A stretch of DNA of 64,000 nucleotides from Octopus sinensis. Taxonomy: Eukaryota. Both the position numbers and the translations under genes were made by a program. The notes under the pieces were generated by a model. The model saw only the letters and a program-made list of their open reading frames with translations, was not told the DNA's origin and did no database searches. Each line of letters starts with the position of its first letter. Positions within the stretch are counted from its first letter, which is position 1. The stretch is from contig NC_043022.1 in NCBI RefSeq assembly GCF_006345805.1, forward strand, positions 4,588,001 to 4,652,000, given 5' to 3'. Shown piece after piece: positions 13,030-50,793 of the stretch.

Positions 13030-13700
13030 AACGAGATGAAGAGTTCATGAAGGAATGACGGAATGAGTGAATGACGGAATGAGTGAATGACGGAATGAGT
13101 GAATGACGGAATGACTGAATGACTGAATGACGGAATGAGTGTATGACGGAATGAGGGAATGACGGAATGAGTGAATGACGGAATGAGTGAATGACGGAAT
13201 GAGTGAATGACGGAATGAGTGAATAACGGAATGAGTGAATGACGGAATGAGTGAATGACGGAATGAGTGAATGACGGAATGAGTGAATGACAGAATGAGT
13301 GAATGACGGAATGAGTGAATGACGGAATGAGTGAATGACGGAATGAGTGAATGACGGAATGAGTGAATGACGGAATGAAAGAATGACGGAATGAGTGAAT
13401 GACGGAATGAGTGAATGACGGAATGAGTGAATGACGGAATGAGTGAATGACGGAATGAGTGAATGACAGAATGAGTGAATGACGGAATGAGGGAATGACA
13501 GAATGAGGGAATGAGGGAATGACGGAATGAGTGAATGACGGAATGAGTGAATGACGGAATGAGGGAATGACGGAATGAGTGAATGACGGAATGAGTGAAT
13601 GACGAAATGAGTGAATGACGGAATGAGTGAATGATGGAATGAGTGAACGACGGAATGAGTGAACGACGGAATGAGTGAATGACGGAATGAGTGAATGACA
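13030..13700. repeat. 16-bp minisatellite (GAATGACGGAATGAGT)n, about 40 units
   Basis: Direct inspection; dimer of two related 8-mers. Confidence 0.95.
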
Positions 13701-24537: not shown

Positions 24538-24905
24538 GTCATCATCGTTTAGCATCCGCTTTCCATGCTGGCATGGGTTGGACGGTTCAACTGGGGTCTG
24601 GGAGGCCAGAAGGCTGCACCAGGCCCAGTCTGATCTGGCAATGTTTCTACGGCTGGATGCCCTTCCTAACGCCAACCACTTCATGAGTGTAGTGGGTGCT
24701 TTTTACGTGCCAGACGAGGCTGGCAAATGGCCAAGATTGGATGTTGCTTTTTACATGCCACCGGCACGGAGGCCTGGCGAGGCTGGCAACGGCCACAATC
24801 GGATGGTGCTTTTTACGTTGCCACCGGCACGAGGCCAGTCGGGGCGGCGCTGGCAATGGCTACGTTCGGATGGTTCTCTTATGTGTCACCGGCACTGGTA
24901 TCACA
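24538..24905 (-). mobile_element. RTE 3' UTR (family D) with internal subrepeats
   Basis: Reverse complement of 27325-27762 type. Confidence 0.75.
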
Positions 24906-25847: not shown

Positions 25848-26237
25848 GTATCTTTGTGGTACCAGTGCCGGTGGCACATAAGAGAACCATCCGAACGTGG
25901 CTGTAGCCAGTACCACATCGCTGGCCTCCGTGCTGTGGGCACGTAACAAACACCATCCGATCGTGGCCGTTCGCCAGCCTTGTCTGGCACCTGTGTCTGT
26001 GGCACATAAAATACACCATCCGAGCGTGGCCGTCTGCCAGCCTCGTCTGGCACCTGTGTCGGTGGCACATAAAATCCCCCACTACACTCTCGGAGTGGTT
26101 GGCGTTAGGAAGGGCACCCAGCTGTAGAAACACTGCCAGATCTGACTGGCCTGGTGCAGCCTTCGGGCTCCCCAGACCCCAGTTGAACTGTCCAACCCAT
26201 GCTAGCATGGAAAGCGGACGTTAAACGATGATGATGA

Positions 26238-27324: not shown

Positions 27325-27762
27325 ATCCTATGACTGGCACCTGGCAGATGCCAAGACCCCTGGACTGGTGGTAGGTAAAAAGCACTATCCGAATCGTGGC
27401 CGATGCCAGCGCCGCCTCGACTGGCTTTCGTGCCGGTGGCACGTAAAAAGCACCATCCGAATCGTGGCCGAAGCCAGTGCCGCCTCGACTGGCTTCTGTG
27501 CCGGTGGCACGTAAAATGTACCAATCCGACCGTGGCCGATGCCAGCCTCACCTGACACCAGTGCAGGTGGCACGTAAAAAGCACCCACTACACTCACGGA
27601 GTGGTTGGCGTTAGGAAGGGCATCCAGCTGTAGAAACATTGCCAGATAAGACTGGAGCCTGGTGCAGCCTCCTGGCTTCCCAGATCCCCGGTCGAACCAT
27701 CCAACCCATGCTAGCATGGAGAACGGACGTTAAACGATGATGATGATGATGATGATGATGAT
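27325..27762 (+). mobile_element. RTE 3' UTR (family D)
   Basis: ~65-bp subrepeats, conserved tail, (GAT)n. Confidence 0.75.
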
Positions 27763-29369: not shown

Positions 29370-30056
29370 CAGTCACAGACAAAAGTTTGGAACATAGGTC
29401 TGAAAATTAGAATCATCATCATCATCATAATCATTTAACGTCCGTTCTCCATGCTAGCATGGGTTGGACGGTTCGACAAGGCTGCACCAGGCTCCAGTCT
29501 GATCTGGCAGTGTTTCTACAGCTGGATGCCTTTCCTAACGCCAACCACTCCGTGAGTGTAGTGGGTGCTTTTCATGTGCCACCGGCACAGCTGCCAGACG
29601 GGGCTGGCAAACGGCCACGGTCGGATGGTGCATTTTACGTGCCACCGGCACAGGGGCCAGACGAGGCTGGCAATGGCCACGATCGGATTGTGCTTTTTAT
29701 GTGCCACCGGCACGGAATCCAGTCTAGGCGGCGCTGGCATCGGCCAAGTTCGGATGGTGCTTTTTATGTACCACCGGCACAGGGATTTTACATGCCTCCG
29801 GCACAAGGATTTTACATGCCTCCGGCACAAGAATTTTACATGCCTCCGGCACAGGGATATCTTTATATTAAATGGCCAAAATTATATTTAATTTGCAATA
29901 TATTATTACTGGGCAAAATTTGGAACATAAATCTGAAAATTAGAATTTTTATATTTTATATTATTTATTAATATACATTGTATTTATTTGAATCAAATTG
30001 TACTTGAGCACAACAATTCTAATTTTGAAAAAAATGTTCCAAAATTTTGGCCACAA

Positions 30057-31040: not shown

Positions 31041-31362
31041 GTAAAATTTATTTGCCAACAGAATGTGGCAGTCCTAAAAAGAACGATCCTACTGTTGTTT
31101 AAGCCCCAGGTAAACATCTTTTCCAGTTGGCTATCGACACACAGTCTGTGTCTCGCACTGAGGATGGGTAACCACTCAGAAACCATGGTCTATGAGTATC
31201 AGGTAAGGCTGGAGACGGGAGCGATGACCACCCTTGCAAACACTATATGGACACAGACTGGGTGTTGAGGAGCCACCTGGGAAAGATGTTTTCCAGGGGA
31301 TTAAACAACAGTAACATCATCCTATACAGGACTGCCACATTCTGTTGGCAAATAAACTTTAC
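31041..31362. mobile_element. MITE with ~90-bp imperfect TIRs and TA flanks
   Basis: gtaaaatttatttgccaacagaatgtggcagtcct… versus …aggactgccacattctgttggcaaataaactttac. Confidence 0.75.
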
Positions 31363-31439
31363 TATTTGGTACTGTTACTGTATATCTCTCACTGAGAGAT
31401 TTAACACAAGTCGTTTCTCTCTCTCTCCCTCCCCCTCTC

Positions 31440-31477
<38 letters not shown>

Positions 31478-31480
31478 TAT

Positions 31481-31659
31481 CTTTTACTCTTTTACTTGTT
31501 TCAGTCATTTGACTGCGGCCATGCTAGAGCACCGACTTTAATCGAGCAACTCGACCCCAGGACTTATTCTTTTGTAAGCCCAGTACTTATTCTATCGGTC
31601 TCTTTTGCTGAACCGCTAAGTGACGGGGACATAAACACACCAGTATCAGACAAACACAG

Positions 31660-31704
<45 letters not shown>

Positions 31705-31863
31705 TACGACAGGCTTCTTTCAGTTCCGTCTACCAAATCCACTCACAAGGCTTTGGTCGGCCCGAGGCTATAGTAGAAAACACTTGCCCAAGGTGCGACT
31801 GAACCCGGAACCATGTGATTGGTAGACAAGCTACTTACCACACAGCCACTCTCGCCTGCGCCT
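31481..31863 (-). mobile_element. SINE-A
   Basis: Consensus match. Confidence 0.9.
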
Positions 31864-32235: not shown

Positions 32236-32642
32236 CTCTTTTACTCTTTTACTTGTTTCAGTCATTTGACTGCGGCCATGCTGGAGCACCGCCTTTAGTC
32301 GAGCAAATCGACCCCGGGACTTATTCTTTGTAAGCCCAGTACTTATTCTATCGGTCTCTTTTGCCGAACCGCTAAGTTACGGGGACGTAAACACACCAGC
32401 ATCGGTTATCAAGCAATGCTAGGGGGACAAACACAGACACACAAACACACGCACACACATATATATATATATACATATATACGACAGGCTTCTTTCAGTT
32501 TCCGTCTACCAAATCCACTCACAAGGCTTTGGTCGGCCCGAGGCTATAGTAGAAGACACTTGCCCAAGGTGCCACGCAGTGGGACTGAACCCGGAACCAT
32601 GTGGTTGGTAAACAAGCTACTTACCACACAGCCACTGCGCCT
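32236..32642 (-). mobile_element. SINE-A, full length
   Basis: Consensus match. Confidence 0.9.
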
Positions 32643-33344
32643 ATTCATTCAATTTTTTTTACAAACTTTTTGTTGCTTCTTGCAATCTCTTCAAAAGTTG
32701 TTGACTATATACTTCGTGTGTGTGTGTGTGTGTGTGTGTGATAACTCCAGGTCAAGACTGACCGAAGAAACTTATGGTGAAAGACTTTCCAGCCGTGGCC
32801 ATGGCCCATTTTAAAACTGTCTCTAGGACTACAATTATCTAAAGTTAATCCTTTCTGCAAAGGCTGCTGGCTGTTTACGCAAGGGAAATTTAGCTGCTAT
32901 TTCTAGCAGATACAGCGAGCCACGATATAACGATGTGATTGTATTTAAGTGTGTATGTATGTGTTTGGTCGTGTGTGTGTCTGTGTATGAGTGTGTGGGT
33001 GCATAGCTATCATATCTCGTTTCCATGTCGTGTATAATGACACCTACATGTATACACCTACACTTATACATTCATACATACACACGCGTGGTCACGTACA
33101 GATCCTCCTTCCTACGTTGGTTAGACTCAGATCGTTCACTCGTACAGAGATACTGTTACAACACACACACACACACATACACATACACACAGGTACTGCC
33201 ACACGTTCACACACATACTGCCACACGTACACACACACACACACAGAAACTGCCATATATATACATTCTGAGTTTCTGATTTAGATACACACAAATATAT
33301 TGTTAAGTATACATACATACATGTATACACAGGCTCGCAAACAC

Positions 33345-35176: not shown

Positions 35177-35810
35177 TCAAATCATTTCCCCCCCTCCTTT
35201 ATAACTTTTACTCTTTCACCCAGCTTTCATTCACATATTCATCTCTCTCTCTTTCTCACTCATTCATTCAAATCGTTTTCCCATTACTTTTTACACTTTT
35301 ACCCTGCTTTTACAATAAATCTGTCACCATCTCTCTCTCTCTCTCTGACTCATTCACTCTTCCTCTCTGCCTCTTTCACACAAGTCCCTTCTTCAAAACT
35401 CTCCTTCTCTCTATGTATAATACTTTATCACTTTCTCTCTCACTGTCTCTCTCACACACTCATTAATATTAACTCACTCACTAACTTTCTTACACTCTTC
35501 CACTTTCCCTCTCTCTTCCTTTCATTCTTTTCTCTTCTCCGTCTCCTTCTCATGCTTTCATTTCTCTTTTTTTTTTTGCTCTCATTCTCTCTTTCACTTT
35601 TTCATTCTGTCTCACACTCTTTGTTCTCTCTTGTTTCTCCTTCACATTATCTTGTCATTTCTCTCTTGTCACTCTCTCCCTCTCCTTCTAACTTCTCTTT
35701 CAGTCAATAGCCTGCTTTTTCATTCCTTTTTTTTTTACCTTTCTACCTGATTTTCAATATCTATCTATCTGTCTTTCATTTTCTCTCTCTTTCTCTCTAT
35801 CTCTGTCAGT

Positions 35811-35865
<55 letters not shown>

Positions 35866-35964
35866 CCTACCTATCTATCTATCTATCTATCTATCTATAT
35901 CTGTCTATCTATCTATCTATCTATCTATATCTGTCTATCTATCTATCTATCTATCTACTATCTA

Positions 35965-36015
<51 letters not shown>

Positions 36016-36030
36016 ATCTATCTATCTATC

Positions 36031-36104
<74 letters not shown>

Positions 36105-36111
36105 CTATCTA

Positions 36112-36155
<44 letters not shown>
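33345..36155. repeat. Low-complexity block: (GATA)n, CA-rich, CT-rich, (CTAT)n
   Basis: (GATA)n 33345-33790, CA-rich 33800-34780, pyrimidine-rich 34810-35760, (CTAT)n 35760-36155. Confidence 0.9.
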
Positions 36156-37466
36156 ATTTGCTGTCAACACCCGTTAAAAGGAGGGCTGGGCATGCCGTGG
36201 TTGATGATGCGCAGACACGCGCTAAGACTGCGACATCTCCGGCTCTATGTAGACGACGGTGAACAGGTGTGGTCGCCGTTTGTGAGGCACGCATTCCCGC
36301 AACTCGTCTCCATGACCGAACTACAGTCGTGGATCAAAAAGAGGCCGAAGAAGGGCGAATGGCACCGCGAGTGTCGCGTTGCTCTCAAGCAACTCTGCCG
36401 TCCCGGGTCGACCTTGAGTGACTTCAACACAACCAAAGCATTCTATAGGGGATTAGTGGAGGGGAGGTACGACGACGAGCTCGGGGCAAACCTGGGCGTC
36501 GACGAGGAATACCTGACCTGTTTCAAACGACTTTCGGCCCGGGACCTATGGACAACTTCCAGAGATCCCTGGCCTGGCGGTGCTACCGAGAAGCGCTACC
36601 CGTTCGGGATAAGCTCTATAGGCATGGCTCGAGAAACACGGGGCCGACCTGCCCGAGATGCGGGCAGAGCGACGAAACCGCTCTGCACGCAATCGTGCAG
36701 TGTCCAGCAATTTCCCACCTGTGGGCTTATGTCGAACGACTGCTGTCACGTGTGGGACGTGTCGGTTTATCCGCCGAGTCTATCGTTAATATCGTCACGC
36801 CTCCTTCCTTCAAACGGGAAGGAAGAGCTATTTTTATCATACTTGTGGCTATGGCGAAAGAATGTATCTGGTGGACGCGTCTGAAAGGATTAGAGACAAA
36901 CACTTTCCTCTCTGGTCAATCTCTCATCAACTTCTTCAAGTATCACTTGAAGAAAAAAGTGAGAGTAGAGAGGCAAGTTTTGTCTAGTGAATGTTTTAAA
37001 AAAAGATGGGTGAATGTAGCAAGGATGGCACGTATGAATGACGAAGCCACCTTGACTATGATTCTATGAACCGTAAAAATTAATACAGAGAGTTGCTTAT
37101 TTGCAAAAAAAAAAAAGAAGAAATATAACATGTGACTTCATTGACCGAGGTTACCGTGGTCTTTTCCGTAGGCTTTTCTTTCCACGGGTAAACCTCACCT
37201 GTCCTCCCCTTTACACTTCATATTGACATTTCTGTGATAACGATCCCTATTGATCAATTTTTTTTCCTCTCCCCCTTTTTTTTTAACCCCCCCTTTTTTT
37301 GTCCTCTTTCTCTCCTTTTACGATCCCTTTTGATCGACCCCCCCTTTTTTATTTTATTTTATTTTTTATTTTATTATTATTATTTTTTTTTCTAAACCTT
37401 CAAAAGAAAAGCTCTACCTTGTAATTTGTTCTATCTGTGTGCAGCCCTGTGTGGCTAATAAAGAAA
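36155..37466 (+). mobile_element. 5'-truncated Tx1/L1-clade LINE (ORF2 3' end, zf-RVT, 3' UTR)
   Basis: HPLKGGLGMP motif; CPRCGQSDETALHAIVQC (CX2CX8HX4C); one frameshift near 36520-36545; stop 37069; T-rich UTR; AATAAA; (CTAT)n on both sides. Confidence 0.9.
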
Positions 37467-37520
37467 CATATCTATCTATCTATCTATCTATCTATATCTA
37501 TCTATCTATCTATCTATCTA

Positions 37521-37578
<58 letters not shown>

Positions 37579-37894
37579 ATCAATCAATCAATCTATCTAT
37601 ATCTACTTGTCTGTCTGTCTATCCATCTATTTATCTATCTACCTATCTCTATCTCTCTCTATATATATTTTTGAGTAAACATTGTCAAGGAGAATTTTTC
37701 TTAAAGTAGTGGAAATGGCTAAAAAACTTTTTGGCTGCTATTTCTAGAAAGTTCAGTATGTGGCAAAGTAATTTATTTTACTAAGCCCTAATTATATAAT
37801 ATAATATTTTGAATACGCCTTAAATGGTCCTTTTACATACTGAACACTACTTGGTGAAATTGATTAATAACTAATTAATTTTACCCTCAATTAT

Positions 37895-38362: not shown

Positions 38363-38761
38363 TACTCTTTACTCTTTTACTTGTTTCAGTCATTTGACTG
38401 CGGCCATGCTGGAGCACTGCCTTTAGTCGAGCAAATCGACCCCGGGACTTATTCTTTGTAAGCCCAGTACTTATTCTATCGGTCTCTTTTACCGAACCGC
38501 TAAGTGACGGGGACGTAAACACACCAGCATCGGTGGTCAAGCAATGCTAGGGGGACAAACACAGACACACACACATATACATATATATACATATATACGA
38601 CAGGCTTCTTTCAGTTTCCGTCTACCAAATCCACTCACAAGGCATTGGTTGGCCCGGGGCTATAGCAGAAGACACTTGCCCAAGGTGCCACGCAGTGGGA
38701 CTGAACCCGGAACCATGTGGTTGGTAAGCAAGCTACTTACCACACAGCCAGTCCTACGCCT
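38363..38761 (-). mobile_element. SINE-A, full length
   Basis: Consensus match. Confidence 0.9.
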
Positions 38762-39259
38762 ATATATATATATATATCTAATCAATCAATACTGTCTGTC
38801 TCTTTCTTTCTCTCTTTCTCTCTCTCACTCACACTTCTCTCCCCCTTCTTCCTACACTCTAACTTCTACCTTCCTCTTCCCACTCAATCCCCCTTCCGTC
38901 ACATTCCCTTATTTTCCCCTCTTTCTTCCGTATCACCCTCCTCCTTCCACATCACTCACTCTCCTTTTCTATATCTCTCTCTCTCTCGTCCGTTTCTGTC
39001 TCCACTTCCTCTGATCCACATCTCTCTTACTCTCACTTCCCCATCACTCTCTCCTTGTTCATATCTCTCTTTCTCCCTCCCTCCTTCCTCCTCCCTCTCT
39101 CTCTCACTTCCCTTTTTTCCCTCTCCCTTCCCTCTCACTCTATCCTTCTCCTCACTTCTATCTCTCTTATTTTCCTTTTCCTATTTATTGATGTTCATCC
39201 CCCACCATCTCTCACTCTTTCTCTCTCTATCCATCTATCTCTCTATATATTTATCAAAT

Positions 39260-42494: not shown

Positions 42495-43254
42495 TACTTT
42501 TCTACTCCAGGCACAAGGCCCGAAATTTTGGGAGGGGGGCGGGGCAGTCGATTAGTTCGACCCCCGTACGCAAATGGTACTTGATTTATCGACCCCGGAA
42601 AGATGAAAGGCAAAGTCGACCTCGTCGGAAGTTGAACTCAGAATGTAAAGACAGACGAAATACCTATTTCTTTATTACCCACAAGGGGCGAAACACAGAG
42701 GGGACGAACAAGGACAGACAAACGGATTAAGCTGATTATATCGATCCCAGTGCGTAACTGGTACTTATTTAATCAACCCCGAAGGGATGAAAGGCAAAGT
42801 CGACCTCGGCGGAATTTGAACTCTGAACGTAGCGACAGACGAAATACCTATTTCTTTACTACCCACAAGGGGCTAAACACAGAGGGAACAAACAAACGGA
42901 TCAAGTCGATTACATTGACCCCAGTGCGTAACTGGTACTTATTTAATCGACCCCGAAAGGATGAAAGGCAAAGTCGACCTCGGCGGAATTTGAACTCTGA
43001 ACGTAGCGGCAGACGAAATACCTATTTCTTTATTACCCACAAGGGGCGAAACACCGAGAGGACAAACAAGGACAGACAAACGGATTAAGCCGATTATATC
43101 GACCCCAGTGCGTAACTGGTACTTATTTAATCGACCCCAAAAGGATGGAAGGCAAAGTCAACCTCGGCGGAATTTGAACTCAGAACGTAGTGGCAGACAA
43201 AATACCGCTAAGCATTTCGCCCGGCGTGCAAACGATTCTGCCAGCTTGCCGCCT
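42495..43254 (-). mobile_element. Nested SINE-E array: one E1 tail, three E2 units, one head
   Basis: E2 tail joins at gaaatacc|tatttc at 42664, 42848 and 43022. Confidence 0.85.
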
Positions 43255-43455
43255 CGAAACGAAGAAGGGCTGCTCAGGCTCCATTATCTATAGCTCAAAT
43301 TTACAGACAACAAAAGACAAAAAAAGGTGAAGGAACCACAAACAGAATGGAAAAATCTTTGATGTTTTGAGCCTAGACTCTTCAACATATCTATATGTGC
43401 ACACATACACAGATACACACACACACACACACACATACATACATATATATATATA

Positions 43456-43862
43456 TACTCTTTTTTTACTCTTTTACTTGTTTCAGTCATTTGACTGCGG
43501 CCATGCTGGAGCACTGCCTTTAATCGAGCAAATCGACCCTGGGACTTATTCTTTGTAAGCCCAGTACTTATTCTATTGGTCTCTTTTTGCCGAACCGCTA
43601 AGTGATGGGGACGTAAACACACCAAGCAATGCTAGAGAGACAAACACAGACACACAAACATATACACACACATACATATATATACATATACATATATACG
43701 ACAGGCTTCTCTCAGTTTCTATCTACCAAATCCACTCACAAGGCATTGGTCGGCCTGGGGCTATAGCAGAAGACACTTGCCCAAGATGTCACGCAGTGGG
43801 ACTGAACCCGGAACCATGTGGTTGGTTAGCAAGCTACTTACCACACAGCCACTCCTGCGCCT
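43456..43862 (-). mobile_element. SINE-A
   Basis: Consensus match. Confidence 0.9.
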
Positions 43863-44257
43863 ATGTATATATGTATAATACAAAAATGGGACAAGAACAC
43901 AAAGCATCCAGTCAATTAGGTGATACAAAAAAGGGACAACAAAACATCCAGACGATACAAAGAAAACAAGGATGGGGCAGTCGGAGTTTTCTTTCTTCAG
44001 TCGAGTTCCAGATTATCTTTCGGCTGGTTATTCTTGAGATTGCTCCAATCTGGCCAGCCCCAAGGAAAAACTAAGCTAAGAGCATCAAATTCCTTGGAAG
44101 AAAGCAGCGAATGTCTATGAAAACAAAGACAGAAACAAAAACGGAGAAATGGTACACAAATACAAATAACAGGACATTAACAACAGGTGTCTTTCGACTA
44201 AGGACGAATTAAATTTAGCTGGTGTGTGTGTGTGGAAATAAAAATAAACTACAACAT

Positions 44258-44638
44258 GGAAGCACTCCGTCGGTTACGACGACGAGGGTTCCGGTTGATC
44301 CGAATCAACGGAACAGCCTGCTCGTAAAATTAACGTGTAAGTGGCTGAGCACTCCACAGACACGTGTACCCTTAATGTAGTTCTGGGAGATATTCAGCGT
44401 GACACAGAGAGGGACAAGACCGGCCCTTTGAAATACAGGTACAACAGAAACAGGAAGTAAGAGTGAGAGAAAGTTGTGGTGAAAGAGTACAGCAGGGATC
44501 ACCACCAACCCTGCCGGAGCCTCGTGGAGCTTTAGGTATTTTCGCTCAATAAACACACACAACGCCCGGTCTGGGAATCGAAACCGCAATCCTACGACTG
44601 CGAGTCCGCTGCCCTAACCACTGGGCCATTGCGCCTCC
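44258..44638 (-). mobile_element. SINE-B, full length
   Basis: Matches 8599-8975. Confidence 0.85.
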
Positions 44639-44689
44639 TACAACAACATAGGCCGAGGTTCACCACAGTTGTTTCAGAAGCGTTCTTTA

Positions 44690-44898
44690 TTCTTTTCTAT
44701 GAGGCCCAAAATTTTTTGGGGAGAGGGCCAGTCGATTAGATCAACCCCAGTATGCAACTGGTACTTAATTTATCAAACCTGAAAGAATGAAAGCAAAGTC
44801 GACCTCGGTGGAATTTGAACTCAGAACCTAAAGACAGACGAAATACCGCTAAGCATTTCGCCGGGTGTGCTAACAATTCTGCCAGTTCACTGCCTTAA
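44690..44898 (-). mobile_element. SINE-E1
   Basis: Matches 4800-5035. Confidence 0.8.
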
Positions 44899-44954
44899 GA
44901 AGCGTTCTTTATTGATGAAGAAAAGGGTTACATCATACCCCAAAAAATGTTATA

Positions 44955-46432
44955 GAGAGAGAGAGAGAGAGAGACTATTGGATAAACAGTAAGGGACTCT
45001 GTATACAAACATCAAGATAATGACAGACAGACAGACAGGCAGATAGATAGATAGACAGACAGACAGATGGACAAACAGATAGAAAGATAGATAGACAGAT
45101 AGACACACAGACAGATAGATAGATAGACAGATAGACAGGCAGACAGGACAGACAGACAGATGGACAGACAAATAGAAATATAGATAGACAGATAGACACA
45201 CAGACAGATAGATAGACAGATAGACAGGCAGACAGACAGACAGATAGACAGAGAGACAGACAGATGGACAGGCAGATAGAAATATAGATAGATAGACAGA
45301 TAGACACACAGACAGACAGATAGATAGATAGATAGAGATACAGACAGATGGACAGATAGATAGACACATAGACAGGATAGATAGAGGAGAGAGAGAGAGA
45401 GAGATGGAGGTGATATTACAGAATGACAACAACAACAACAACAACACAACAACAACAACAAGACCAGGTCAACAAGATTGAGTGCAATTATTTGTGGTAA
45501 ATGTGTTAAAAGTTGTGAAATTGCCATCAGCCATTAAGCAGTTTGATTACTCAGGGTTATTACTCAGTTACCTATTAATGGGGGAAATTTTATTTGCTGC
45601 AAACCATTGCTCACCTTGCTGGAATGGATTACACTCCACACACACACGGAATTAGTTACTTTTTAACACACACACACACACACACACACAACTGCATGCA
45701 CACACACAAACACACACATATACATATGAATACATACCTACATACACACATAGATACATACATACATACGTACACACACGCATACATATATACATACATG
45801 CATATACACACACATACATACATGCATACATACACACACATATATACATACATGCATATACACATACATACATACATACATGCATACACACACACATACA
45901 TATATACATACATGCATATACACACATACATACATGCATACATACACACACATATATACATACATGCATATACACATACATACATACATACATGCATACA
46001 CACACACATACATATATACATAACATGCATATACACGCACATACATAAATGCAACATACCACACATATTATATATACAGCATATACACACACATACATAC
46101 ATGCATACACACACACATACACATATACATACATGCATATACACGCACATACATACATGCATACATACACACACATATATATATATACATGCATATACAC
46201 ACACATACATACATGCATACACACACACATACATATATACATACATGCATATACACACACATACATACATACACACACATACATACATGCATACACACAC
46301 ACATACATATATACATACATGCATATACACATACATACATACATACACATACATGCATACACACACACACACACACATACATACATGCATATACACACAC
46401 ATACATGTGCATGTATTTAAACACACGCACAC
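44955..46432. repeat. (GACA/GATA)n (44955-45410) and (CATA/CA)n (45660-46432) arrays
   Basis: Direct inspection. Confidence 0.9.
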
Positions 46433-46897
46433 ATTTTTGATGCAATCGCAGCTGTGTGGTAAGGAATTTGCTTCTCAACCGCATGGTTCTGAGTTCAATC
46501 CCATTGTGTGGTACTTTGCACAAGTGTCTTTTACTATAGCCCTGGGCCAACCAAAACCTTGTGAGTGGATTTGGTAAATGGAAACTGAAAGAAGCCCATC
46601 ATTATGTGTGTGTGTATGTGTGTCCTTCACTACTGCTTGACAACTGGTGTTAGTGTGTTTACATCACTTTAACCTAGCAGTTCAGCTAAAGACACTGATA
46701 AAATATGTCACTGGTTTAAAAAAAAACAAATACTGAGGTCCATTCCTTTGACTAAAAATTCTTCAGTCGTACTCCAGCATGGCCACAGTCTAATGACTGC
46801 AGCAGATAAAAGATAAAAGACATGTATATTCAGATAAATATTTATATACATATATAAATATATATCTGTAAAATAATATGTGACAATTATTCAATAG

Positions 46898-47060
46898 CCG
46901 CAGGAGTGGCTGTGTGGTAAGTAGCTTGCTAACCAACCACATGGTTCCAGGTTCAGTCCCACTGCGTGGCATCTTGGGCAAGTGTCTTCTGCTGCTATGC
47001 CCCGGGCCGACCAATGCCTGTGAGTGGATTTGGTAGACGGAAGCTGAAAGAAGCCTGTCG

Positions 47061-47108
<48 letters not shown>

Positions 47109-47343
47109 GTATGTGAGGTGTTTGTGTGTCTGTGTTTGTCCCCCTAGCATTGCTTGACAACCGATGCTGGTGTGTTTACGTCCCCGTCACTTAGCGGTTC
47201 AGCAAAAAGAGACCGATAGAATAAGTACTAGGCTTACAAAGAATAAGTCCCGGGGTCGATTTGTTCGACTAAAGGCAGTGCTCCAGCATGGCCGCAGTCA
47301 AAATGACTGAAACAAGTGAAAAAGAGTAAAAGCGAAAAGAGAG
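46898..47343 (+). mobile_element. SINE-A inserted in the left arm of a palindrome
   Basis: Consensus match; flanks …caatagcc| and |gagccaagata. An older plus copy lies at 46440-46820. Confidence 0.9.
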
Positions 47344-47560
47344 CCAAGATAAAACTCTGAGTTTCGGATGCCAAGGTGGAAATCCACAACGCCATCTCTT
47401 CAGTTATCTGAGATGGTGGTGTGGATTTCCACCTTGGCATCCGAAACTCAGAGTTTTATCTTGGCTATTGAATAATTGTCACATATCATTTTACAGATAA
47501 ATTTCCTCTATTTACCTAATATTGAGGTCTCTTTCTTTCTTTTGTCATCTTACCGTTTTT
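47342..47560. mobile_element. Inverted Penelope-like pLTR pair (perfect 46-bp hairpin arms)
   Basis: agccaagataaaactctgagtttcggatgccaaggtggaaatccac and its exact reverse complement 33 nt later; the arm continues to match 46864-46899. Confidence 0.65.
47347..47409 (-). ncRNA. Type I hammerhead ribozyme motif
   Basis: AGAUAA-CUGAAGA-[GAUG…GUGG AUUU CCAC…CAUC]-C-GAAACUCAGAGUU/UUAUCU; core intact, 6-bp stem I. Confidence 0.7.
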
Positions 47561-47570
47561 ACCAATATAT

Positions 47571-47977
47571 ATACTCTTTACTCTTTTACTTGTTTCAGTC
47601 ATTTGACTGCGGCCATGCTGGAGCACCACCTTTAATCGAGCAACTCGACCCCGGGACTTATTCTTTTGTAAGCCCAGTACTTATTTTATCGGTCTCTTTT
47701 GCCGAACCGCTAAGTGACGGGGACATAAACACACCAGCATCGGTTGTCAAGCAATGCTAGGGGGACAAATACAGACACACAAACACACACACGCATATAT
47801 ATATACATATATACGATGGGCTTCTTTCAGTTTCCGTCTACCAAATCCACTCACAAGGCTTTGGTCGGCCCAAGGCTATAGTAGAAGACACTTGCCCAAG
47901 GTGCCACGCAGTGGGACTGAACCCGGAACCATGTGGTTGGTAAACAAGCTACTTACCACACAGCCACTCCTGTGCCT
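47571..47977 (-). mobile_element. SINE-A, full length
   Basis: Consensus match. Confidence 0.9.
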
Positions 47978-48232
47978 ATATGTATATATATGGATTAGAA
48001 GCCCTAAGCTGTGATGTCTAGAACTATAAACTTGCTAACTGTTCAAAGATGCATCAAGCTCATTTCAACCGCAAACATGTTTGTTTTTTTTTACATCACT
48101 GCTTAGCGATTCTAATCCACATTTTATTATGAATGAGCATCTGCTTAGCACAACCAATTACTGTACTTTGATTGGAATATACTAAGAGAGGCCTGTTTCT
48201 TGTCAATTCGTAGTGCTGTCTTTCCAGTATCT

Positions 48233-48272
48233 GATGCTGAAGAGGAAATAACTAATTTGAAATGCATACATC
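48233..48272 (+). ncRNA. Decayed minimal hammerhead motif
   Basis: GAUG-CUGAAGA-(weak stem II)-GAAA-UGCA-UA/CAUC. Confidence 0.4.
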
Positions 48273-48325
48273 CATCCGTCAGGGTAAGAGGCATTTGAAA
48301 CTGACTTGGGGATTTTTCACCTATT

Positions 48326-48731
48326 TACTCTTTTACTTGTTTCAGTCATTTGACTGCGGCCATGCTGGAGCACCGCCTTTAGTTGAGCAAATCAACCCCG
48401 GGACTTATTCTTTGTAAGCCCAGTACTTATTCTATCGGTCTCTTTTGCAGAACCGCTAAGTGACGGGGATGTAAACACACCAGCATCGGTTATCAAGTAA
48501 TGCTAGGGGGACAAACACAGACACACAAACACATACACACACATATATATGTATACACACATACATACGACGGGCTTCTTTCAGTTTCTGTCTACCAAAT
48601 CCACTCACAAGGCATTGGTTGGCCCGGGGCTATAGCAGAAGACACTTGCCCAAGATGTCACGCAGTGGGACTGAACCCGGAACCATGTGGTTGGTTAGCA
48701 AGCTACTTACCACACAGCCACTCCTGCGCCT
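48326..48731 (-). mobile_element. SINE-A, full length
   Basis: Consensus match. Confidence 0.9.
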
Positions 48732-48814
48732 ATTTGTCTACAGTCAGACATTTTCTTCATCACAAAATTATGACAAATGGCTTTTTTATGGGTTCAGATA
48801 TGCCTTAGGCATAT

Positions 48815-49160
48815 TTGAACTTGCAGGCAAAGTGGTTGAGCCCTTTTCGAATGTTGGGCCTCACGGAGGCAATGACCAAGACCTTTGGCATAATGTCGTG
48901 CTTGAGAAGAAAACCCATCAAGCTGAACAAAATTGCAGTCATGGCAGATACTGGGGTCATGCAAATGTTGCCAAGTGCAGGTAGTATGCAAAAGCCCCTA
49001 TTACATTGTTGGTGTGGTTGGCATTAGGAAGGGCATCCAGCTGTAGAAACCTTACCAAATCAGACTGGAGTCTGGTGCAGCCTTCCAGCTTACCATCCCT
49101 AGTCAAACCATCCAACCCATGCCAGCATGGACAATGGACATTAAATGATGAGGAGGATGA
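48815..49160 (+). mobile_element. RTE ORF end joined to family-D 3' UTR
   Basis: RMLGLTEAMT/DLWHNVVLEKKTHQAE (as at 15420-15510) continues into gcattaggaagggcatccagc…: links family D to RTE. Confidence 0.65.
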
Positions 49161-49309
49161 TGGCATACAGGCATTGCTGTGTGGTAGGAAGCTTGCATTC
49201 CAGCCACATGGTTCCTGGTTCAGTCCTGGGACATGGCACCTCGGGCAAGTGTCTTCTACTATAGCCTCATTCCTATCAAAGCCTTGAAAGTATATTTGAA
49301 AATGATAAT

Positions 49310-49717
49310 GCAAAGATCCTACAGGATTTTATGATTCAGTGCGACCATGAGATAGAGAATAGGAAACCAGACATAGCGTTATTACCTGACAACAAGGTAT
49401 GTGATAAGGAAGAAAGAAAAGTCGATACATACGAGAGATTAGCTTGGGAGGTTAAGCAGTTGTGATCACTGAAAAAGGTGGTTATAGTACCAATAAATGC
49501 TTGAGACCCGGGAAGAGCGAGTAAAAATCTTGAGAAGTACATGGAACAAATAGGGGCTGCAATAAGGGTGGAGCACTTGCAGAACACAGCACTGCTTGGA
49601 ACCACTCGGTTACTCCGGACGGTGTTCGAAAAATAAGGGGTGTTACCTTAGTTCACTGGTAGTGAACAGCTAGCACTGTAGTACATCTCCAGCGTTAGAA
49701 GCTGTGCAAAGACAATA
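49310..49717 (+). mobile_element. R4/Dong-like LINE 3' fragment
   Basis: KILQDFMIQCDHEIENRKPDI…LEKYMEQIGAAIRVEHLQNTALLGTTRLLRTVFEK*, then (AAT)n. Confidence 0.8.
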
Positions 49718-49964
49718 AATAATAATAATAATAATAATAATAATAATCCTTTCTATTATAGACACAAGGCCTGAAATTTGGGGGAGGGGATGTGTTGGTT
49801 ACATTGACCCTAGTACTCAACTGGTACTTAATTTATCAACCCTGAAAGGATGAAAGGCAAAGTCAACCTTGGTGGAATTTGAACTCAGAATGTTGCAACA
49901 GGTGAAATACCACTAAGCATTTTGTCCAGTCTGCTAACAAATCTGCCAAATCACCATGCTAATA

Positions 49965-50425
49965 ATAATAATAATAATCCTTTCTACTATAGGCACAAAG
50001 CCTGAAATTTTGGGGGAGGGGGCTTGCTGATTACATTGACCCCAGTATTCAACTGGTACTGATTTCATCAACCCCGAAAGGACATAAGACAAAAATCAAC
50101 CACAGTGGAAGTTGAACTCAGAACATAAAGAATGGCAGAATACCTATTTCTTTATTACCCACAAGGGGCTAAACACAGAGGGGACAAACAAGGACAGACA
50201 TAGGTATTAAGTCAATTACATCGACCCCAGTGCGTAACTGGTACTTAATTTATCGACCCCGAAAGGATGAAAGGCAAAGTTGACCTCGGCGGAATTTGAA
50301 CTCAGAACGTAACAGCAGACGAAATACCGCTAAGCATTTCGCCCAGCGTGCTAACGTTTCTGCCAGCTCGCCGAATACCATTAATCATTTTGCCTGGCAT
50401 GCTAACAATTCTGCCAGTTCACCAT
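49965..50425 (-). mobile_element. Old SINE-E1 containing a full young SINE-E2 (50145-50372) with 7-bp TSD
   Basis: GAATACC at 50138-50144 and 50373-50379; the host head resumes at 50380. Confidence 0.85.
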
Positions 50426-50454
50426 TTTTCCTTTGCATAGAATTAGCACAAGTG

Positions 50455-50793
50455 AAGGCACATGGCTCAGTGGTTAGAGCATCATGCTGACAATCATGAG
50501 TTAATGAGTTCAATTCCTGGGCCAGGCTGCGGGTTGTTTTCTTGAGCAAGACACTTTATTTCATGTTGCTCCAGTTCACTCAGCTGAAGAAATGAGTCGT
50601 GATGTCACTGGTGCCAAGGTGTATCGGCCCCTTTGCCTTTCCCTTGGATAACATTGGTGGAACGGAGAGGAGAGGTTGGTAGGCATGGGCGACTGCTGAT
50701 CTTCCATCAACAACCTTGTTTGGACTTGTGCCTTGGAGGGGAACTTTCTGGGTGCAATCCCATGGTCATTCAGGACCGAAGGAGGTCTTTACA

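Follow-up and report, generated by a model that had tools for sequence, protein, structure and literature searches.

Stringent-type pairs of a long interspersed nuclear element (LINE) and a short interspersed nuclear element (SINE), for example UnaL2/UnaSINE1 of the eel, share a 3' stem-loop. LINEs of the Tx1 clade are often target-specific, and in crocodilians the SINEU families and their Tx1-Mar LINE partners insert into one common target (Kojima 2015, PMC4494074). Here, we analysed a stretch of 64,000 nucleotides of the Octopus sinensis genome (NC_043022.1, positions 4,588,001 to 4,652,000, forward strand; hereafter the window), in which a SINE that we call E2 is joined, at each of its 3' ends, to one and the same nucleotide in the head of its own family or of a sister family, E1. 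The closest known case is SINEU/Tx1-Mar, where a SINE likewise lies preferentially inside one repeat family at preferred positions, in that instance by means of target-specific Tx1-clade LINEs. The target of SINEU is, however, an unrelated Mariner DNA transposon, whereas that of E2 is the head of its own or sister SINE family. Moreover, Tx1-Mar LINEs occur in the target of SINEU, while the only LINE copy available here lies in a microsatellite, and its putative partnership with E2 is drawn from tail similarity. As far as our reading goes, a SINE that prefers the promoter-bearing head of its own or a sister family has not been described.

Junctions between E2 and the SINE head

All SINE copies under discussion lie on the minus strand, and their coordinates are given on the plus strand (Table 1); counts of copies, junctions and chance matches refer to the window. 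The first 163 nt or so of E1 and E2, their head and body (positions 1-163), are common to both families. E1 ends in …CCCCCAAAATTTCAGGCCTTGTGCCTATAGTAGAAAGG followed by (ATT)n, and E2 ends in …GTCTGTCCTTGTTTGTCCCCTCTGTGTTTAGCCCCTTGTGGGTAATAAAGAAATA. At least six loci carry E1 (5017-4859, 5318-5197, 44885-44730, 49948-49799, 50128-50030 and the last unit of the array described below), and two carry E2. Both are short, discrete elements bounded by target-site duplications (TSDs), of 7 bp for E2 and 16 bp for the E1 at 44885.

The 3' ends of E2 (…AATAAAGAAATA) abut GGTATT at position 45 of the E1/E2 head in four cases out of four. Three of them belong to an array at 42495-43250, with 3' ends at 42665, 42849 and 43023, each followed by GGTATTTCGTCTG, i.e., by the head from position 45 onward; on the plus strand these junctions read cgaaatacc/tatttc and fall at 42664/42665, 42848/42849 and 43022/43023. 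The fourth belongs to a nested copy, E2y. A 19-nt junction pattern with up to three mismatches recovered exactly the three array junctions and 50139-50157, against a chance expectation of about 0.1, and a 21-nt tail pattern recovered the four E2 tails and the 3' end of a LINE fragment and nothing else (expected 0.00). Five uninterrupted head sites are also present.

The two TSD copies that flank the nested E2 are identical (GAATACC as read on the plus strand), and when the flanks are joined with one TSD copy kept, the host E1 becomes colinear with three other E1 copies, without any gap at the junction. Nearly all CpGs of the host E1 have been lost, while about 13 are retained in the nested E2, and because the host is CpG-decayed and the E2 is CpG-rich, the E2 insertion postdates its host. 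The element at 50145-50372 is thus a bona fide later insertion, produced by a duplication-generating mechanism. We also considered GGTATT as part of the E2 3' end itself; this was ruled out, as in the nested copy GGTATT is followed by the C of the host and then by colinear host sequence. A different tRNA-like SINE (…GGCTCAGTGGTTAGAGC…GAGTTCAATTCCTGG…) at 50440-50600 (plus strand) adjoins the E1 head directly, with no ARAGORN call.

Table 1. Features of the window discussed in the text, in plus-strand coordinates
Feature	Position	Strand	Remarks
E2y, complete E2 SINE	50145..50372	-	228 bp, CpG-rich, inside old E1
TSD copy, upstream	50373..50379	-	7 bp, GGTATTC (minus-strand reading)
TSD copy, downstream	50138..50144	-	7 bp, GGTATTC
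Host E1, head	50380..50425	-	positions 1-44, CpG-decayed
Host E1, body and tail	49974..50137	-	followed by (ATT)n tail
Array unit A, E2	43023..43250	-	full-length, sole head of array; own head site GGTATTTTG (T4 run)
Array unit B, E2	42849..43022	-	without positions 1-44; 10-bp deletion in tail
Array unit C, E2	42665..42848	-	without positions 1-44
Array unit D, E1	42495..42664	-	without positions 1-44; E1-type tail, still CpG-rich
E1	44730..44885	-	uninterrupted head site GCTTAGCGGTATTTCGTCTG; 16-bp duplication AATAAAGAACGCTTCT
E1	49799..49948	-	uninterrupted head site; (ATT)n tail
LINE fragment	36156..37466	+	5'-truncated, frameshifted; ORF2 C-terminus with zf-RVT and ~400 nt of 3' untranslated region
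LINE 3' end homologous to E2 tail	37417..37466	+	hairpin AGCC-CTGTGT-GGCT, then AATAAAGAAA
(TATC)n microsatellite	35758..36155	+	adjoins 5' end of LINE fragment
(TATC)n microsatellite	37469..37666	+	adjoins 3' end of LINE fragment

In SINE orientation, the array runs A, B, C, D, and the units B, C and D all begin at position 45. The three E2 units are 91.4-92.5% identical among themselves and 89.7-92.5% identical to the nested copy. Since the last unit of the array is of E1 type and truncated at position 45, the founder junction of the array was an E2 tail on position 45 of an E1. Its host and flanks are not those of the nested copy, and the nested copy and the array founder junction therefore count as two clearly independent events in all three models of the array considered below. 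With about 9 head sites in 128,000 strand positions (2 × 64,000), random insertion at that nucleotide and in that orientation has a probability of about 7e-5. Insertion at the same nucleotide (44/45) in at least two independent events is thus supported far beyond chance, and the junction pattern points to a real insertion preference of E2. The initial annotation of the window had proposed a complete young E2 within an old E1 with a 7-bp TSD, and three further E2 tails, in units that differ from each other, joined to the head at one position; these descriptions were borne out by the present analysis.

The head itself contains a box A-like (TGGCAGAAACG) and a box B-like (GAGTTCAAATTCC) motif, recognized by eye only. 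ARAGORN made no tRNA call in it and no Rfam tRNA model matched at E<=1; a tRNA origin of the E1/E2 head is putative and unconfirmed. At positions 43194-43213 (minus strand), the head site of unit A carries GGTATTTTG, with its T4 run, in place of GGTATTTCG. If T4 terminates RNA polymerase III in the octopus, transcription of unit A would stop at position 51. The tRNA-derived octopus SINEs OK, OR1 and OR2, reportedly described by Ohshima and Okada in 1994, are abundant. One of them may be the counterpart of E1 and E2, and we know of no homing behaviour of OK, OR1 or OR2.

Tail homology with an L1-superfamily LINE

Over 42 bp, the tail of E2 is 81% identical to positions 37425-37466, which form the exact 3' end of the LINE fragment (E=6e-4 in a comparison restricted to the window). 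The E1 tail is likewise homologous to the LINE 3' end. E1, E2, the LINE, and the SINEs and LINE ends of L002 (a 20.8-kb locus of Argonauta hians) have in common a 4-bp stem, a loop CTTGT and the motif A(A/G)TA(A/G)AGAAA. The stem varies between AGGC/GCCT in E1, GCCC/GGGT in E2, and GGCC/GGCT and GACC/GGTC in Argonauta. Covariation across this hairpin is marked: 92.9% of cells are paired and 8 cells show a double change, a level that was reached in 0 of 500 shuffles, while shifted registers gave 18-48%. Since the hairpin changes by compensation, the E2 tail is of the kind recognized by a stringent LINE reverse transcriptase, and the hairpin together with AATAAAGAAA is presumably what the reverse transcriptase of this LINE recognizes. 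Taken together, the alignment, the 21-nt scan, the covarying hairpin and the TSD-bounded element support the view of E2 as a discrete SINE whose tail was derived from a LINE and corresponds to the LINE 3' end. A LINE with the exact E2-type tail (3' end CCCCTTGTGGGTAATAAAGAAATA) was not found. The arrangement resembles UnaL2/UnaSINE1 in its short conserved hairpin and common 3' motif with compensatory stem changes; pairs of the UnaL2/UnaSINE1 type, however, insert without marked site specificity, unlike E2.

A central block of E1 and E2 (positions ~105-165) also occurs in Argonauta SINEs, e.g., at L002 12040-12095, despite unrelated heads, and reads …TTTCGGGrTCGATAAAnnAAGTACCAGT…CACTGGGGTCGAT…; judging from this conservation, it may be a SINE core domain of octopods.

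In order to place the LINE, we relied on its relatives. The domain content of the window fragment is limited to the zf-RVT C-terminus, and its C-terminal open reading frame (ORF) matches proteins of Argonauta hians and Octopus bimaculoides. Exhaustive search with a relative, P0004, reaches full-length proteins. One of these, P0015, is 39% identical to P0004 (not to the window fragment) and contains an APE-type endonuclease (Exo_endo_phos), a reverse transcriptase (RVT_1) and zf-RVT; its best match in PDB is human L1 ORF2p (2e-73), over the endonuclease and the reverse transcriptase. Placed through these relatives of the window fragment, the LINE family is assigned to the L1 superfamily; the Tx1 affinity proposed in the initial annotation is putative. 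Among the LINEs recently active in O. vulgaris, the L1 type is represented in the published list by L1-Tx1 alone (PMC13282606). An exact look-up of the window LINE ORF and of P0004 returned no record for either. P0004, which is 56% identical to the octopod LINE C-terminus, is deposited as 'MAG: zinc-binding domain-containing protein [Herbaspirillum sp.]' and probably represents host contamination in a metagenome-assembled genome (MAG).

Simple repeats recur at the ends of this lineage. A relative from a Logan assembly (L130, 72% identical) ends in …AATAATAAAAAAGAA followed by (TCTA)n, the Argonauta LINE end is followed by (ATT)n, and the end of another relative is followed by a short CA run. 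The lineage would thus appear either to end in simple repeats or to target them, a target and a 3' repeat of its own being indistinguishable here. We also asked whether (TATC)n resembles the head site, and judged the similarity unconvincing. Tx1-clade LINEs that target microsatellites are cited in PMC4494074, namely Kibi in (TC)n, Koshi in (TTC)n and crocodilian families in (TTCC)n/(TTTC)n. The window LINE inside (TATC)n and L130 ending in (TCTA)n would be similar to these, in a comparison of two copies.

Proposed mechanism and its alternatives

We propose that E2 is a LINE-dependent retroposon which inserts by site-preferring target-primed reverse transcription, with a nested or an in-register outcome and with nicking leading the choice of site; we give this reading a probability of roughly 55%. 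E2 would be a non-autonomous retroposon with the head and body of E1 (positions 1-163), whose final ~55 nt were copied from the 3' end of an octopod L1-superfamily LINE lineage. Insertion would proceed by target-primed reverse transcription, the antisense strand being nicked first, behind …AAATACC. Strongly preferred would be an E1/E2 head that lies in the same orientation and is cut between its position 44 and GGTATT(T/C); in head context, the proposed target is GCTTAGCGGTATTTCGTC. Reverse transcription up to the 5' end of the RNA would yield a full nested copy with a 7-bp duplication, as at 50145-50372. Alternatively, the cDNA could anneal to the homologous head sequence immediately upstream of the cut, giving a 5' junction in register. 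The insert would then consist of E2 positions 45-228 with no visible duplication, and a complete E2 and an intact target would be regenerated. Repeated in-register insertions would produce a one-headed, head-to-tail array such as that at 42495-43250.

For the choice of site, the leading candidate is sequence-specific nicking by the endonuclease of a LINE sublineage matching E2, for which the Tx1 clade and SINEU/Tx1-Mar offer precedents. It may be reinforced if E2 RNAs end in a GGUAUUU read-through that pairs with the nicked strand (…AAATACC-3'); such RNAs could come from copies already within a head, transcribed on into GGTATTT. The simple-repeat ends of the related LINEs give a hint that 3'-end pairing matters in this lineage. 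Decay of CpG could turn GGTATTTCG into GGTATTTTG, with a T4 run, as in unit A. A bolder version of the proposal would make E2 a self-homing SINE, nearly exclusive to one nucleotide in the heads of its own superfamily and usually resolved by homology at the 5' end. Each insertion would convert an E1 locus into an E2 source gene (E1 head with E2 body and tail) plus a promoterless remnant. The GGTATTT(T) read-through, with a T4 terminator after CpG decay, would carry a memory of the target in the RNA, whose 3' end would pair with the nicked strand at the next head. One SINE family would in this way replace another, much as a gene drive does, and tandem arrays could arise along the same path. We regard this extended version as unlikely.

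Several observations weigh against the proposed mechanism. There are just two E2 loci in 64 kb. The sole LINE copy of the window lies inside (TATC)n and outside the SINE heads, and none of the LINE copies examined was found in a SINE head; the expectation that the LINE with the best tail match would occupy the same target as E2 was, therefore, not borne out. Other SINEs with the same tail hairpin behave differently: the 16-bp duplication of the E1 at 44885 and those of two Argonauta SINE copies, of 13 bp and 17 bp, mark unrelated sites, AT-rich in the case of Argonauta, and among about 10 tails in L002 there were 0 internal SINE-head junctions. GGTATT specificity is not obviously a property of machinery common to the same-tail SINEs; as these insert elsewhere with longer duplications, the fixed GGTATT junction and the 7-bp duplication are special to E2. 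Within the array, the units A, B and C share the derived states GATTAAATAAG (where E1 copies and the nested E2 carry GATAAATTAAG) and CCGTTTG, and the units have no duplications of their own, so the array may go back to one event with subsequent local amplification. The read-through and pairing of the RNA would be a purely hypothetical step. Further E2 copies were sought by the exact E2-tail pattern, with 0 found in viral contigs and 0 in metagenome contigs, and in GTDB genomes the E2-tail pattern gave 1 chance match, in a rabbit-gut MAG. Among metagenome contigs, the box-B-region pattern gave nothing but chance matches and no SINE-bearing locus, and a 40-aa junction profile run against a protein collection gave 1 candidate and no match, from which we conclude that SINE-sized octopus ORFs are not in that collection.

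The idea of E2 homing into its own family, put forward in the initial annotation, thus stands as far as the same nucleotide of a related SINE head was entered in at least two independent events; repeated homing within the array and a GGTATT specificity of the shared machinery do not follow. Serial nested homing as the origin of the array, proposed at the same time, is not supported: full-length nested insertions in series should have piled up head fragments (positions 1-51) upstream of A, and none was found there. Instead, the array has one head, three head-truncated units and shared derived changes. Disruption of the promoter holds for the full-length nested copy, which splits the box A-like and box B-like motifs of its host, but not for the array, in which the head persists and a complete E2 is formed anew.

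Of the alternatives, local amplification survives best, although we consider it doubtful. Here, E2 would have inserted once at position 45 of an E1, and the 184-bp unit (45-228) would then have been multiplied by unequal crossing-over or replication slippage, so that the window would contain two homing events and the array would be silent on repeated homing. The derived states shared by A, B and C and the absence of own duplications are consistent with it, as are the single head and the identical junctions; a possible duplication TTCGTTT(CG)AGG around the whole array is weak (a 7-mer, 9/9 with one mismatch). One-headed SINE arrays of bivalves, of the form TSD1-(SINE)n-TSD1 and with head-truncated inner units, have been put down to unequal recombination (PMC11481361). 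Like the octopus array, they have a complete head on the first unit and inner units truncated at one fixed head position. However, the bivalve inner units are also truncated at the tail, a signature of internal duplication, whereas the octopus E2 units keep a complete 3' end, and the last unit of the octopus array, unlike in the bivalve arrays, belongs to another family (E1). No plain internal duplication of one element can, therefore, account for it. The junction also consists of the exact E2 3' end and position 45, as in the independent nested copy, so that a site-specific founder is still needed. Furthermore, the non-adjacent units A and C are closest, with three further states in common, while the adjacent B and C share one. 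This pattern would fit separate source RNAs slightly better than local duplication. The possibility, raised in the initial annotation, that all junctions descend from one amplified composite with shared mutations and no TSDs of its copies' own is partly realized in the array, but the nested copy has its own 7-bp TSD.

Two other descriptions of the array were also tried. A duplicated 358-bp dimer was ruled out, as the last unit is an E1 and B is not its sister. Assignment of the array head to the E1 rather than the E2 type was dropped as ambiguous, the head of unit A agreeing with E2y at 54/64 positions and with an E1 at 53/64.

Reverse transcriptases of non-LTR (long terminal repeat) elements, e.g., that of R2, are able to jump from the end of one template to another, which makes template switching in a single event conceivable. 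Reverse transcription would have started on an E1 RNA at an ordinary site; the end of the cDNA, AAATACC, at GGUAUUU (positions 45-51), would then have jumped to the 3' end of an E2 RNA with a GGUAUUU read-through, three times in all, ending on a full-length E2. One head, a 3'-most unit of E1 type down to its tail, and perhaps one duplication that encloses the array are compatible with this model, as are unit differences of the kind expected from different RNAs. Such switching is also favoured by an Argonauta SINE of ~155 bp that has this type of tail, three full-length units of which follow each other head to tail (L002 4903-5360). On the other hand, template switching leaves the nested copy unexplained, since this entered an old E1 at a later time and left a clean duplication; it also needs hypothetical E2 RNAs that end in GGUAUUU, and the flanking duplication is the weak one described above. 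We therefore consider this model improbable. As for the Argonauta triplet itself, its units are separated by C(C/T)ATTT(T)GT and it stands directly after the (ATT)n tail of a LINE end. Finally, essentially random insertion, with SINE heads struck through mere abundance (SINEs make up 11.6% of the O. vulgaris genome, PMC13282606) and with two independent loci only to be explained, is very improbable, as the same nucleotide and orientation recur at both loci; at the site density of the window, and with the site taken as given by the first event, the second has a chance of about 1e-4.

Implications and other repeats of the window

On two loci, the self-targeting SINE is a well-founded lead and not yet a result. 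If the behaviour of E2 is general, it would show how one SINE family can overwrite another, and would provide a retrotransposition-based origin of one-headed SINE arrays, which are usually ascribed to unequal recombination. It would also offer a natural system in which endonuclease specificity can be separated from RNA-target pairing in target-primed reverse transcription. Given that SINEs account for about 12% of octopus genomes, the consequences for genome structure could be considerable.

The window contains several further repeats. A 16-bp minisatellite (GAATGACGGAATGAGT) occupies 13053-13699 with 41 copies at 90% identity, and a GC-rich unit of 62-68 bp (…GGTGCTTTTTACGTGCCACCGGCAC…) forms four separate short arrays on both strands, at 24715-24895, 25933-26075, 27367-27585 and 29564-29784. 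A dispersed repeat with the ORF string …FRLPNPLTR(L/H)W(S/L)ARGYSR(K/R)HLPK… is found in four places (31247-31825, 32416-32814, 38544-39014 and 62067-62636). A 227-bp tandem repeat is present at 55997-56626 in 2.8 copies of 92% identity, and a very regular 42-bp tandem repeat at 51957-52868 comprises 21.8 copies of 95% identity, with an open reading frame throughout.

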